Of a stretch of 64,000 nucleotides of DNA, positions 1 through 2,127 are shown piece after piece. The position numbers and the translations under genes are program-made. Where the stretch lies: sequence record NC_005083.2. One strand, written 5' to 3'. Position 1 is the stretch's first letter. The number at the start of each line of letters is the position of its first letter. Under the pieces are notes generated by a model. It saw only the letters and a list, made by a program, of their open reading frames with translations. It was not told the origin of the DNA and made no database searches.

Positions 1-118
1 TAAGTCTGTACTGCATTTCAACAGCAAATGTACAATATTTTCGAAGATTGCGTTTTACAATCTCACAGCGATGCAAGATACAATCAAGTTCGTCATTTAT
101 GTCATCAAACTTATTCAT
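1..118 (-). CDS. Hypothetical protein inside the tRNA cluster, 5' part only (MNKFDDINDELDCILHRCEIVKRNLRKYCTFAVEMQYRL...), running off the window edge
   Basis: Manual translation: ATG at 118-116 preceded by GAGG, open to position 1. Not in the ORF track. Confidence 0.6.
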   Translation of the reverse strand, partial: MNKFDDINDELDCILHRCEIVKRNLRKYCTFAVEMQYRL

Positions 119-132
119 AAAACCTCGAAAAT

Positions 133-256
133 TGGTGGAGAGTGATGGATTTGAACCACCGACCAAAAGATTTACCTAGTTATTAAGGTTTGCAGCATGA
201 ATGCTTGTCAGTATTCTTTAACATTCTTTTGCTCTACCAGACTGAGCTAACTCTCC
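133..256 (-). ncRNA. tRNA-like RNA 1: intact acceptor, D and T arms and CCA end, with a 54-nt loop replacing the anticodon loop
   Basis: Minus strand: GGAGAGT-TA-GCTC AGTCTGGTA GAGC-A-AAAGA[54 nt]TCTTT-TGGTC-GGTGG TTCAAAT CCATC-ACTCTCC-A-CCA. Confidence 0.85.
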
Positions 257-262
257 ATAATT

Positions 263-380
263 TGAGGGTGAAGTACAGGACTCGAACCTGCGACCTCCGG
301 CGTGCATGTAAATGCAGAATGAAATCTTATCAGACTTCGTTTTTTGAGCCGGCATTCTAACCAACTGAACTAACTTCACC
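263..380 (-). ncRNA. tRNA-like RNA 2: 46-nt loop replacing the anticodon loop, G-1:C73-type acceptor, no encoded CCA
   Basis: Minus strand: G-GTGAAGT-TA-GTTC AGTTGGTTA GAAT-G-CCGGC[46 nt]GCCGG-AGGTC-GCAGG TTCGAGT CCTGT-ACTTCAC-C-CTCA. Confidence 0.85.
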
Positions 381-384
381 ATAG

Positions 385-478
385 TGATCAACAGCCCTCA
401 GAATACCCGCAGTCTACACCCTATAATAAGGGACTATACTGAGTCGTTTAATGAGTCGGATAACTCAACTGTTAATCA
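385..478 (-). ncRNA. Putative ~95-nt multibranch structured RNA between the tRNA-like units
   Basis: Closing stem TGATTAACAG/CTGTTGATCA; inner helices GAGT/ACTC, CTCAG/CTGAG, AGTC/GACT, CCCT/AGGG; no ORF. Confidence 0.5.
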
Positions 479-490
479 AATTGTTAAAAA

Positions 491-628
491 CATATAGTTG
501 CGGGTGCAGGATTCGAACCTACATCACGATCTTATGAATGATATGCGAAATTGATTGCCGTACAGATTCTTATCAGAATCAGTTTTGTGCTACGTGTGCT
601 ACCACTTACACCAACCCGCAACTATATG
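491..628 (-). ncRNA. tRNA-like RNA 3 with expanded anticodon region, enclosed by a 15-bp perfect terminal stem; no encoded CCA
   Basis: Inverted repeat CATATAGTTGCGGGT (491-505)/ACCCGCAACTATATG (614-628); D arm GTGT AAGTGGTA GCAC; T arm GTAGG TTCGAAT CCTGC; 4-nt variable loop TGAT. Confidence 0.8.
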
Positions 629-634
629 CTTTCG

Positions 635-674
635 GGATGCTTACGCAGGTTCTTCTCTACGTAAGCACAGATCC
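635..674. other. Bulged stem-loop
   Basis: GGAT-GCTTACG ... CGTAAGC-(ACAG bulge)-ATCC. Confidence 0.45.
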
Positions 675-694
675 TCAATGTATATTTTGCCTTA

Positions 695-783
695 GCTAAT
701 CACAACACAACCCAATATCGTGCGCTTTAATTACGGGATTGATGACCCGTTCGCATGTGATTAGCGTAAAAGTATGATTACGC
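695..783 (-). ncRNA. Putative structured RNA (nested hairpins)
   Basis: 10-bp perfect inverted repeat GCTAATCACA (695-704)/TGTGATTAGC (756-765) enclosing TGCG/CGCA and ACGGG/CCCGT; adjacent GCGTAA/TTACGC hairpin. Confidence 0.45.
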
Positions 784-874
784 ACCTTTTCTTCTTCAAT
801 GTCCAAGGCAAAGAGGACTATGAATACCAGTGCGAGAAGATATACAATCAAATTGCTCACCTCGCTTAATAAGT

Positions 875-1021
875 GAGAGTACATTGGTCGAGTGTAACGG
901 AATCGAACCGTTCCCACGATCTCCCTATGATATGCGTAAATTGGTTGCTGAATATAATCATGTCTGATTACAGTATGCTACGTGTGCTGCCACTACACCA
1001 ACACTCGACCAATATACTCTC
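875..1021 (-). ncRNA. tRNA-like RNA 4 (core 885-1007, ends A-CCA) with expanded anticodon region inside a 21-bp terminal stem; paralog of RNA 3
   Basis: CGAGTGT-TG-GTGT AGTGGCA GCAC...AACGG TTCGATT CCGTT-ACACTCG-A-CCA; inverted repeat 875-895/1001-1021 with one non-Watson-Crick position; insert clearly homologous to RNA 3. Confidence 0.82.
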
Positions 1022-1022
1022 G

Positions 1023-1174
1023 ATATTTTAAATGTGCGCTACTTGCACGCCGACTGAGCGAATTTTAACTCAGCTAGTTTTTGTTTGAGACATCGTCCGC
1101 TAAGACTATTCTCTGCATGCCAGAACTTATACTGGCTCTATGTATTCATTTCGGCTAACGCACATTTAAAATAT
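1023..1174 (-). ncRNA. Putative ~150-nt structured RNA with a 16-bp perfect terminal stem
   Basis: ATATTTTAAATGTGCG (1023-1038)/CGCACATTTAAAATAT (1159-1174); inner helices GCCGA/TCGGC, GCCAG/CTGGC, CTGAG/CTCAG. Confidence 0.6.
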
Positions 1175-1288: not shown

Positions 1289-1316
1289 ATCTTATCAGCT
1301 TCTCAGCGAAAGTCAA
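1289..1316 (-). promoter_or_regulatory. Sigma70-type promoter for the RNA array
   Basis: TTGACT-16 bp-TAAGAT with TG extension and an A-rich upstream element. Confidence 0.7.
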
Positions 1317-1380
1317 CATCTTTTTCAAATATTTCATCGAGTTGAAAGTTTGTTTTCTGTCTCTCGACTCGATGAAATAC

Positions 1381-1408
1381 ATTCTACATCCTTTTCAGAT
1401 GAAGTCAA
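1381..1408 (-). promoter_or_regulatory. Second tandem sigma70-type promoter for the RNA array
   Basis: TTGACT-16 bp-TAGAAT with an AT-rich upstream element. Confidence 0.7.
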
Positions 1409-1424
1409 CAACTATTTTAACTTT

Positions 1425-1679
1425 TTAAACGGAAATGATAATGCCGCTTTCAGTCTCACCTCGTTCAAGCGCAGCGTGCTTGATCTGAAGTTGTGATACT
1501 GCTTGCTGAAGTTCAATAATAGCTTTGTCATAAAGCTTGTTGTTCTCTTTAAGCAAAGCAATCTGATCGGTCTGCATACCAATGATGTACGTTAGTAGAA
1601 CAACGTTCTCATCAGTCGTCAGCGTTTCAGGCGCTTCATTGTACTTCTTCAGCACCGCTTCGGTAGATAGATCAGTCAT
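1425..1679 (-). CDS. Hypothetical coiled-coil protein (~84 aa)
   Basis: ORF track 1425..1688; the likely start is MTDLSTE at 1679, overlapping the 57B stop. Confidence 0.7.
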   Translation of the reverse strand: MTDLSTEAVLKKYNEAPETLTTDENVVLLTYIIGMQTDQIALLKENNKLYDKAIIELQQAVSQLQIKHAALERGETESGIIISV

Positions 1680-2127
1680 TATTAGCAACCCATTCTAGAT
1701 CTAATGGTTCGATATATTCATCGACAAGGCGAACCTCTGTATTGATGAACATAGGGGTAATTACGTCGTCATAAGACAATGTGACGTGCGGAGTATAGTC
1801 AGGGTAATCGTGAGTACCACCGATAGAGATAAGGTCTTCGTGACGTTCTACAAGAGCAGGACATGACATCTTAGCAACGACCGCGTGTTTACCGTCTTGC
1901 GTTTTCCAACAGTCAACTTGTTCAACAGTGGCAACGAAAGTGGTATCTACAACGGGCACATCAATTTGCTTACGACTATAAAGCACAGTCACGTGGAATT
2001 TATCGGGATCTAACGGATTTTTTAGACGAAGCGTTTTTTGCAAGCGAACTAGTTCTTGCTTACTTGCTTCGTCTAATTTGATACCAACGTAAGTTCCCTG
2101 ACTCTCAAGGAACTTAGATAGTTTCAT
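1672..2127 (-). CDS. 57B: gp57B, 2H phosphoesterase (Acb1 anti-CBASS nuclease family)
   Basis: Two HxT motifs (KFHVTVLYSR, TPHVTLSY); position next to 57A and the tRNA cluster as in T4. Confidence 0.9.
   Translation of the reverse strand: MKLSKFLESQGTYVGIKLDEASKQELVRLQKTLRLKNPLDPDKFHVTVLYSRKQIDVPVVDTTFVATVEQVDCWKTQDGKHAVVAKMSCPALVERHEDLISIGGTHDYPDYTPHVTLSYDDVITPMFINTEVRLVDEYIEPLDLEWVANND

Follow-up and report, generated by a model that had tools for sequence, protein, structure and literature searches.

Conserved long helices close the ends of two tRNA-like RNAs in Vibrio phage KVP40

The long helices that close the ends of two tRNA-like RNAs of Vibrio phage KVP40, RNA3 and RNA4, are selected RNA-level features, constant in length and recurrent, in which the CCA end is buried. 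Comparison of their sequences with those of related phages indicates that both are purpose-built non-coding RNAs and not dead tRNA genes. The explanation that we favour, with a probability of about one half, is that the helices bury the CCA end, block tRNA-type maturation and tag every unit to be excised, most likely by the RNase III of the host. The expression of these RNAs, the enzymes that act on them, their true ends and the roles of the released products are what we infer.

The array and its terminal helices

The window, that is, the whole stretch of 64,000 nucleotides that was analysed, corresponds to positions 180835-244834 of KVP40 record AY283928.2 (window 100-1100 is record 180934-181934, 100% identical). 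RNA1 to RNA5 and a small ORF are all minus-strand features that occupy the promoter-proximal end of the KVP40 tRNA cluster, and genes 3, 1 and 57B are transcriptionally upstream of them. A role for gp57B as an RNA ligase on these RNAs was rejected, since gp57B is Acb1. The features are listed below in window coordinates; R1 is our own covariance model, built from RNA3 and RNA4.

136..256, minus strand: RNA1, a comparator with the insert module, an ordinary 7-bp acceptor stem and an encoded CCA (Rfam tRNA 55.5 bits, 49-nt insert)
267..379, minus strand: RNA2, a comparator with the insert module and an ordinary acceptor stem (Rfam tRNA 51.9 bits, 45-nt insert)
486..633, minus strand: RNA3, whole sealed unit, 148 nt (R1 145 bits; fold z -5.6)
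486..505, minus strand: RNA3 terminal helix, 3' strand, ending in UUUUU and without CCA; the U-run pairs with an upstream GAAAG
506..522, minus strand: RNA3 T arm (4 of 5 T-stem pairs covary)
529..542, minus strand: RNA3 inner stem AUC/GAU with an 8-nt anticodon-like loop, part of CGCATATCAT (alignment)
555..581, minus strand: RNA3 insert module, a 7-bp hairpin with GAUA loop, 3 nt and CGGCAA (pattern scan; covariation)
614..633, minus strand: RNA3 terminal helix, 5' strand, 20 nt, of which the inner 7 nt are the acceptor 5' strand
696..851, minus strand: small ORF of 51 aa between RNA4 and RNA3 (third-codon-position substitution pattern in 16 phages)
875..1021, minus strand: RNA4, whole sealed unit, 147 nt, paralogue of RNA3 (R1 143 bits; fold z -6.6)
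875..895, minus strand: RNA4 terminal helix, 3' strand, with A-CCA (885-888) paired to leader UGGU
945..971, minus strand: RNA4 insert module, a 7-bp hairpin with GACA loop, 3 nt and CAGCAA (pattern scan; covariation)
1001..1021, minus strand: RNA4 terminal helix, 5' strand, 21 nt (orthologue comparison, covariation)
1023..1174, minus strand: RNA5, a non-tRNA domain with a 19-bp helix, 1156-1174 with 1023-1041 (genome-wide helix scan)
1289..1408, minus strand: two predicted sigma-70-like promoter matches upstream of the array (consensus scan only), at 1408-1381 (10 of 12 consensus positions) and 1316-1289 (9 of 12, with TG)

In KVP40-group records, RNA1 and RNA2 appear as tRNA-Pseudo-4 and -5. 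RNA3 and RNA4 are labelled tRNA-OTHER, tRNA-Cys or trnX pseudo in the records of phi-pp2 and phi-Grn1/ST2, RNA3 being tRNA-OTHER and RNA4 trnX pseudo in that of phi-pp2. In papers on KVP40-group phages, the sole mention is of low-scoring 'pseudo-forms', and, apart from the 2003 genome paper, the literature yielded neither a KVP40 transcriptome nor an account of RNA3 and RNA4 that goes past that term. Three RNA runs with the same species label contained zero phage reads, which says nothing about expression; one DNA run contained the stretch.

The helices were measured outward from the acceptor stem, in KVP40 and in the same region of 18 related Vibrio phages (73-100% identity). The first-pass annotation had proposed a 15-bp repeat at the ends of RNA3; 491-505 is indeed the perfect reverse complement of 614-628, but the true length of the helix is 20 bp (486-505/614-633), its outer five pairs (G.U, three A-U, G.U) running into a T-run. 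The 21-bp helix proposed for RNA4 (875-895 with 1001-1021) is present in full, and one of its 21 pairs is a U.G wobble in KVP40 and C-G in most relatives. The pairing of the RNA4 leader over the CCA was also seen: UGGU faces A-CCA (window 885-888), as it does in all orthologues, and in RNA3 the CCA has been lost. Because leader pairs with trailer in this way, the acceptor stem extends into a helix of 20 or 21 bp that buries the discriminator and the CCA position. When folded by minimum free energy, both RNAs form the complete terminal helix, with the z-scores given above taken against shuffles.

The length of these helices is constant among orthologues. That of RNA4 has 21 pairs in every one; that of RNA3 has 20 positions, 19-20 of them paired, in every full-length orthologue but ValKK3, where the 5' arm has a 1-nt gap. 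The upstream partner of the RNA3 T-run is GAAAG, GAAAA, AAGAA or UAGAA, depending on the orthologue. The stems of RNA3 and RNA4 had been taken for unrelated sequences, which proved wrong: they are homologous and alike at the outer 12-14 positions, most clearly in phage K566, where both start with UAGA, and the one such gene present in phage 1.081.O has a 20-bp stem intermediate between them. In TCU-VP03-AIR1, a homing-endonuclease gene stands in place of RNA3, which indicates that the paralogues are at least partly redundant and that at least one copy is dispensable.

Covariation was assessed in a 19-sequence alignment of the helix, with 500 shuffles and slid-partner controls. Thirteen of the 21 helix pairs have changed on both sides, 99.2% of the cells are paired, and none of the 500 shuffles matched the observed covariation values; when the partner was slid by 1-3 columns, pairing fell to 26-44%. 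Sixteen helix cells are G.U or U.G, all of them valid on the minus strand only. As these would be A.C mismatches on the opposite strand, selection has acted on the minus-strand RNA and not on the DNA, which, with the compensatory changes, bears out the view of the helices as selected RNA structures.

These data bear directly on the idea that the loci are decaying pseudo-tRNAs with accidental repeats, or that the repeats are DNA inverted repeats of a small mobile element. Records of the KVP40 group do call them pseudo-tRNAs and homing endonucleases are active in the region, but the two arms change in concert, with compensatory double changes at 13 pairs, the G.U pairs make sense on one strand only, the length of the helix is constant across genera, and the flanks that were read show no sign of a target-site duplication. 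This idea, already disfavoured, now seems scarcely credible. Within the 5' strand, A2, A4 and G12 are invariant from Vibrio to Aeromonas phages and their neighbours covary, a pattern that speaks for recognition of particular bases and against a generic double-strand cut.

A tRNA-like body around a conserved insert

RNA3 and RNA4 combine the D arm, T arm and acceptor stem of a tRNA with an insert located within the anticodon stem, in its 5' strand. Four of the five T-stem pairs covary and the D stem is invariant, with GG in its loop, so that tRNA D and T arms are both present. The insert is about 50 nt long in RNA3 (45-60 nt in the family) and leaves an anticodon arm made of an outer ACG/CGU stem and an inner stem of 2-3 bp with a 7-8-nt loop. 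The motifs reported earlier as common to the two inserts, ACGTAGCA, GCAAYCAATTT(A)CGCATATCAT and AGATCGT(G), were all found. A module consisting of a 7-bp hairpin with a GAYA loop, 3 nt and CNGCA is common to all five insert-bearing tRNA-like RNAs of KVP40 (hereafter shells), namely Pseudo-3 (record 179301-179416) and RNA1-4, and the pattern scan gave exactly five modules of this kind in the genome. All seven pairs of the insert hairpin covary. No further copy of the strict module pattern occurs within the KVP40 tRNA cluster, and 13 other matches in the genome have differing loops or spacers, shuffled genomes giving 4-15. RNAalifold suggests in addition a GUAGC/GCAAC stem closing the insert, the pairs of which never vary; this stem is unproven.

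The conserved CGCATATCAT, taken to be single-stranded, had been put forward as a possible pairing or guide sequence. The comparison does not support this reading, given that its AUC pairs with a downstream GAU to form a 3-bp inner stem with a 7-8-nt anticodon-like loop; phage D479 has GAA/UUC where RNA3 and RNA4 have AUC/GAU. Since CGCATATCAT holds the 5' strand of a residual anticodon-like stem, it is no obvious guide, and the remainder of CGCATATCAT, being invariant, provides no evidence for or against such a role.

The loop of RNA3 and RNA4 drifts among orthologues in sequence and length (7-9 nt) and is thus not a working anticodon. With two copies of tRNA-Asn, tRNA-Phe and tRNA-Cys intact in KVP40, there is no decoding gap for these genes to fill. 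Neither RNA matched tRNA RF00005 in an Rfam search, even at E <=10, and ARAGORN found nothing, or, with introns allowed, arbitrary anticodons (Val-CAC and SeC-TCA). The combination of a 7-bp acceptor stem, an unpaired discriminator and a free or addable CCA, by which a tRNA would be recognised, is absent from both. No Rfam family was found for RNA3, RNA4 or RNA5.

The position of the insert inside the anticodon stem, and the survival of a 7-8-nt anticodon-like loop, raise the question of whether these are interrupted tRNA genes, in which the insert would be a removed intron and the helix would keep the two halves in place while RNA-repair enzymes of the phage cut and ligate them. In 'type b' shells (Pseudo-3, BUCT-ZZ01 RNA-b, Ahp1 and phiAS5) the loop is CUGUUAA, an Asn loop that is perfectly conserved from cyanophage to Vibrio phage. 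The free drift of the RNA3 and RNA4 loop argues against this proposal, as do the intact phage tRNAs for the candidate anticodons, the loss of CCA from RNA3 and the fact that the insert is the best-conserved part of the molecule. There is, moreover, no bulge-helix-bulge motif and no Rfam ribozyme match, and we know of no splicing endonuclease in bacteria. We consider interrupted genes very improbable.

Proposed excision, neighbouring domains and a Ro60-like protein

The helices that bacterial RNase III cuts span about two turns, so that an uninterrupted one of 20 bp is a natural substrate for it. A leader that pairs with the RCCA and discriminator hampers RNase P and makes the end inaccessible to the CCA-adding enzyme and the synthetases. 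According to the mechanism that we favour, RNA3 and RNA4 would be redundant paralogues in a phage family of tRNA-derived non-coding RNAs, in which the helix would bar RNase P, the CCA-adding enzyme and the synthetases, leaving an RNA neither matured nor charged as a tRNA. The same helix would be the double-stranded cut signal that frees each unit from the polycistronic RNA, probably by host RNase III, and the excised product would keep an exonuclease-proof blunt end; a cut at RNA4 would also release the mRNA of the downstream small ORF. In every lineage the double helix is a continuous one of about two turns, 19-21 bp, the size of an RNase III substrate. No gene for RNase III or a dsRBD protein was found in the phage, so the enzyme acting would be that of the host.

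A scan of the 245-kb KVP40 genome for helices of at least 17 bp enclosing 60-320 nt yielded just three on the minus strand, those of RNA3, RNA4 and RNA5, all within 700 nt; six shuffled genomes gave 0-2 helices of at least 17 bp each, both strands together. The helix of RNA5 (1023-1041/1156-1174) encloses 114 nt of a non-tRNA domain that ends 1 nt upstream of RNA4. It is 19-20 bp long, with compensatory changes in F86, K566 and 1.081.O, and the fold has a z-score of -5.9. RNA5, RNA4 and RNA3 form a row of domains of about 150 nt, each closed by a two-turn helix and all seemingly on one transcript. That domains of differing content are all closed in this manner points to a generic role of the helices in end definition, not tied to one cargo.

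The small ORF between RNA4 and RNA3 has a TTG start at 851, a hydrophobic N-terminal half and a synonymous substitution pattern, and matched no Pfam family. Its Shine-Dalgarno sequence, GAGGUG (858-863), begins 12 nt past the RNA4 helix. This arrangement could mean that the helices control transcription and translation, the RNA3 helix with its U-run serving as an intrinsic terminator and the RNA4 helix keeping the pyrimidine-rich 3' strand (CUCUC) off the Shine-Dalgarno sequence. A run of five U ends the RNA3 helix directly, opposite an A-rich tract, and a competing CUCAC/GUGAG hairpin overlaps the RNA4 helix by 3 nt. The U-run of RNA3 is, however, the homologue of the CUCUC strand of RNA4 and lies inside the helix, which encloses 108 nt, unlike known terminators with loops of 3-8 nt, and a terminator scan made no call. 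Moreover, RNA2 and RNA1 are located further downstream and their strand has no promoter match for them, and no ORF follows RNA5, RNA3 or the Aeromonas copies. Control of this kind is therefore quite unlikely to be what the helices are for.

Sealed relatives extend beyond the Vibrio phages. The R1 model, which gives KVP40 RNA3 and RNA4 145 and 143 bits, scores a shell of phiAS5 at 92, cyanophage BUCT-ZZ01 RNA-a at 82, KVP40 Pseudo-3 at 69 and a shell of Ahp1 at 63 bits. The sealed Aeromonas shells have a helix of 20 bp in phiAS5 and avDM12, whereas Aeh1 and PX29 have 19 bp, and one pair has changed from G.U to A-U; the end helix of the Ahp1 shell consists of 9 bp, one C.A mismatch and 10 bp. 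phiAS5 and Ahp1 also encode one extra tRNA-like RNA each, which differs in its body and has its ends paired over about 20-21 bp. BUCT-ZZ01 RNA-a has the body of RNA3 and RNA4 on an ordinary 7-bp acceptor stem with ACCA. A long helix for it was rejected, despite a full-length alignment to the model, because its flanks are direct repeats of the spacer. Members of the family with ordinary ends (Pseudo-3, RNA1 and BUCT-ZZ01 RNA-a) indicate that sealing is a derived, selected state, and the comparison argues for its selection in the KVP40/Aeh1 group of T4-like phages. A pattern scan of IMG/VR for the D arm with ACGTAG gave one match only. BLAST matches of the cyanophage shells in Klebsiella, Salmonella and Campylobacter phages were set aside as ordinary tRNA 3' halves.

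The evidence fits what had first been suggested for the long stems, that is, RNase III-type excision, control of RNase P access or a non-aminoacylatable RNA, as far as sequences can tell, and the fit is strengthened by the third, abutting domain sealed by 19 bp and by the sealed relatives found among Aeromonas phages. A sequence alone does not reveal whether RNase III will cut it, and a protein bound to perfect 20-bp helices could just as well protect them.

KVP40 also encodes, on the same strand as the shells (record 168286-169719), a protein with the domains DUF2828 and DUF7788. Its AlphaFold model (pLDDT 80) was compared with the PDB by Foldseek, the 13 best matches all being Ro60/TROVE proteins (9kop at 1.3e-8, 2nvo, 1yvr; TM about 0.55). 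The MIDAS motif DxSxS of the vWA domain is conserved. A sequence search of the PDB with this Ro60-like protein returned designed armadillo repeats only, and the Pfam TROVE model misses it. DUF2828 proteins are present in about 710 phage records, and to our knowledge no partner RNA has been assigned to the phage Ro60-like proteins of this type. Shells and the Ro60-like gene co-occur in every shell-bearing phage found (KVP40, D479, BUCT-ZZ01, Ahp1, LR756501 and phiAS5/Aeh1), and T4 has neither. In BUCT-ZZ01 the shells come directly downstream of the gene; in Aeh1/phiAS5 the gene is about 2.6 kb upstream of them, on their strand, and in KVP40 it is 11-13 kb away, again on the same strand. The products of the sealed units probably work with the phage Ro60-like protein.

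How they would do so is another matter. One proposal is that the long 5'-3' helix is itself the docking site of the protein, RNA3 and RNA4 being phage Y RNAs of Yrn1 topology, with ends at the acceptor position and a tRNA-like module above. The Ro60-like predicted fold with its conserved MIDAS, the co-occurrence with shells and the proximity of the genes in BUCT-ZZ01 and Aeh1/phiAS5 are consistent with it, and bacterial Y RNAs likewise mimic tRNA, have a long 5'-3' stem and are encoded near Ro60 (PMC4201824). In addition, a Thermus phage, phiLo, encodes its own Ro60, which binds the phage's own Y-like RNAs, Yrl1/2 (PMC12135203). What the five KVP40 shells have in common is, however, the insert module and not the long helix, since three of them have ordinary ends, and RNA5 and other sealed RNAs have differing bodies. 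The leader of the Ro60-like gene contains UUACAGCAA in a small stem over the ribosome site and start; with the CNGCAA module common to all shells, this makes the module the likelier handle, if the protein binds. The helix has no bulge and no conserved GNCGAA, a CGAA at the foot of RNA3 being found in KVP40, QD01, CZ01 and nt-1 and absent in phiGrn1, F86 and K566. The single match to the Rfam YrlA family, at 29.8 bits (threshold 69), spans the RNA2/RNA1 junction and not RNA3 or RNA4, and no Rfam families were found near the Ro60-like gene. The distance of 11-13 kb in KVP40 also speaks against docking on the helix, as does the module being barely enriched at DUF2828 genes: within 6 kb of 80 viral loci there were 18 matches, against 6-12 (about 9) in shuffles, so that adjacency of shell and gene is not general. 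On balance, a helix that serves as the handle is unlikely.

A broader proposal, which we hold to be doubtful at present, is that RNA5-RNA4-RNA3, together with RNA2, RNA1 and Pseudo-3, would be the precursor, in several units, of a new class of Y-like phage RNAs, unpermuted and tRNA-derived, that use CNGCAA as a handle for a divergent Ro60-like ring protein. The ends of such RNAs would be either open, with CCA, or sealed by a helix measured to 20 bp, and it would depend on the sealing whether a host nuclease is tethered to the particle or the particle is threaded or cut. Encoded next to the anti-CBASS gene Acb1, such particles might serve counter-defence or the takeover of host RNA decay.

Comparison with known systems

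Engineered 'tRNA scaffold' RNAs carry foreign RNA in the anticodon arm for stable expression. They resemble RNA3 and RNA4 in combining a tRNA body with a payload in that arm; RNA3 and RNA4, however, are natural and conserved and have sealed ends, whereas the engineered scaffold relies on those tRNA ends. The comparison shows that the loci listed as pseudo-tRNA or 'tRNA-OTHER' are selected RNAs with a non-tRNA feature, a helix of about two turns by which the CCA end is no longer free. For annotation, this translates into a simple rule, according to which a tRNA-like match with a large insert in the anticodon arm and an end helix of about 20 bp is treated as a distinct RNA gene and not as a pseudogene. 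The array also offers a system for asking how a tRNA fold is diverted from translation, how arrays of non-coding RNAs are processed during infection and which RNAs are the partners of DUF2828 proteins.

T4 also has small stable RNAs of unknown function in its tRNA cluster, RNAC and RNAD (species 1 and 2; PMC3014915, PMC9697503). These lie at the far end of the cluster, whereas RNA3 and RNA4 lie at the near end, and they were rejected as homologues because R1 matches only ordinary T4 tRNAs, at <=26 bits. Processing stems for RNase III, in rRNA operons and in T7 early RNA, are leader-trailer helices of about two turns, arranged in tandem and followed by mRNA, as here. Known RNase III sites usually have internal loops or bulges, whereas the helices of RNA3 and RNA4 are perfect and prolong the acceptor stem, and cleavage here is predicted.

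Several Y RNAs, namely Deinococcus Yrn1, YrlA (RF02553) and phiLo Yrl1/2, are tRNA-like, with a long stem of 5' and 3' ends and a co-encoded Ro60-type protein, as are RNA3 and RNA4. The end stem of Yrn1 is at the acceptor position (PMC4201824), as in RNA3 and RNA4; YrlA is circularly permuted relative to tRNA and RNA3 and RNA4 are not. The KVP40 RNAs further differ from Y RNAs in having no YrlA match and neither GNCGAAN0-1G nor a bulged Ro-binding helix, and in that their partner candidate is of the divergent DUF2828 type, encoded 11-13 kb away. RNA3 and RNA4 are thus not tRNAs, not YrlA RNAs and not T4 RNAC or RNAD. By analogy, they would work most like structured RNAs flanked by processing stems and like Y RNAs of the Yrn1 type.

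Shells and sealed helices in KVP40 and other phages

Further tRNA shells and sealed tRNA-like RNAs were located as follows.
L020 (Synechococcus phage BUCT-ZZ01):860-1103, minus strand: two shells, lying immediately downstream of the gene for the Ro60-like protein
KVP40 record 179301-179416, L025:689-802, L081 (phiAS5):9876-10013 and L020:860-973: type b shells
Aeromonas phage phiAS5 record 181162-181431 (pieces L117 and L081): two sealed tRNA-like RNAs, back to back

The two BUCT-ZZ01 shells differ from each other and carry the same 34-nt insert module, identical in both, which indicates that the module is homogenised or copied from shell to shell within one phage. In the type b shells, the Asn-type anticodon loop CUGUUAA, which is set on a 2-bp inner stem, is perfectly kept from the cyanophage to the Vibrio and Aeromonas phages, and this conservation hints that the loop is still read by some enzyme, such as Tgt or AsnRS. 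In phiAS5, the upstream helix (20 bp) has about 6 nt (AACAGC) of its 3' strand in common with the 5' strand of the helix that follows; formation of one may therefore exclude the other, or they may form one after the other.

Elements beside RNA3 and RNA4

Window 696-851, minus strand: small ORF of 51 codons between RNA4 and RNA3, with a TTG start and a GAGGUG ribosome site
Window 1023-1174, minus strand: RNA5, a 152-nt non-tRNA domain 1 nt upstream of RNA4
L013 (TCU-VP03-AIR1):500-620: RNA3 cut short by a homing-endonuclease gene

Most of the substitutions in a comparison of 16 phages affect the third base of a codon, so the ORF probably encodes a real small membrane protein, the N-terminal half of which is hydrophobic. 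The annotated start of KVP40.0319 lies further upstream than the TTG, inside RNA4. RNA5 contains 3-4 hairpins within a conserved, covarying closing helix of 19-20 bp, and matched no Rfam family. In TCU-VP03-AIR1, RNA3 is truncated past the initial 10 nt of its helix. In ValKK3 (L011), the 5' arm of the RNA3 helix has a 1-nt gap, which reflects a mistake in sequencing or else damage to this copy.

Two protein-coding genes

L022:2278-2340 (KVP40 record about 169720-169790), minus strand: leader of the Ro60-like gene
Window 1672-2127, minus strand: gp57B

In the leader, the region closed by a 6-bp stem (GACAUU/AAUGUC) holds UUACAGCAA together with the Shine-Dalgarno sequence and the AUG start codon, and a T-arm-like hairpin lies between the -35 and -10 hexamers of the gene. 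Some records label gp57B 'RNA ligase'; its Pfam match is Acb1, the anti-CBASS phosphodiesterase (1.7e-46), and the KVP40 RNA array therefore adjoins a counter-defence gene.
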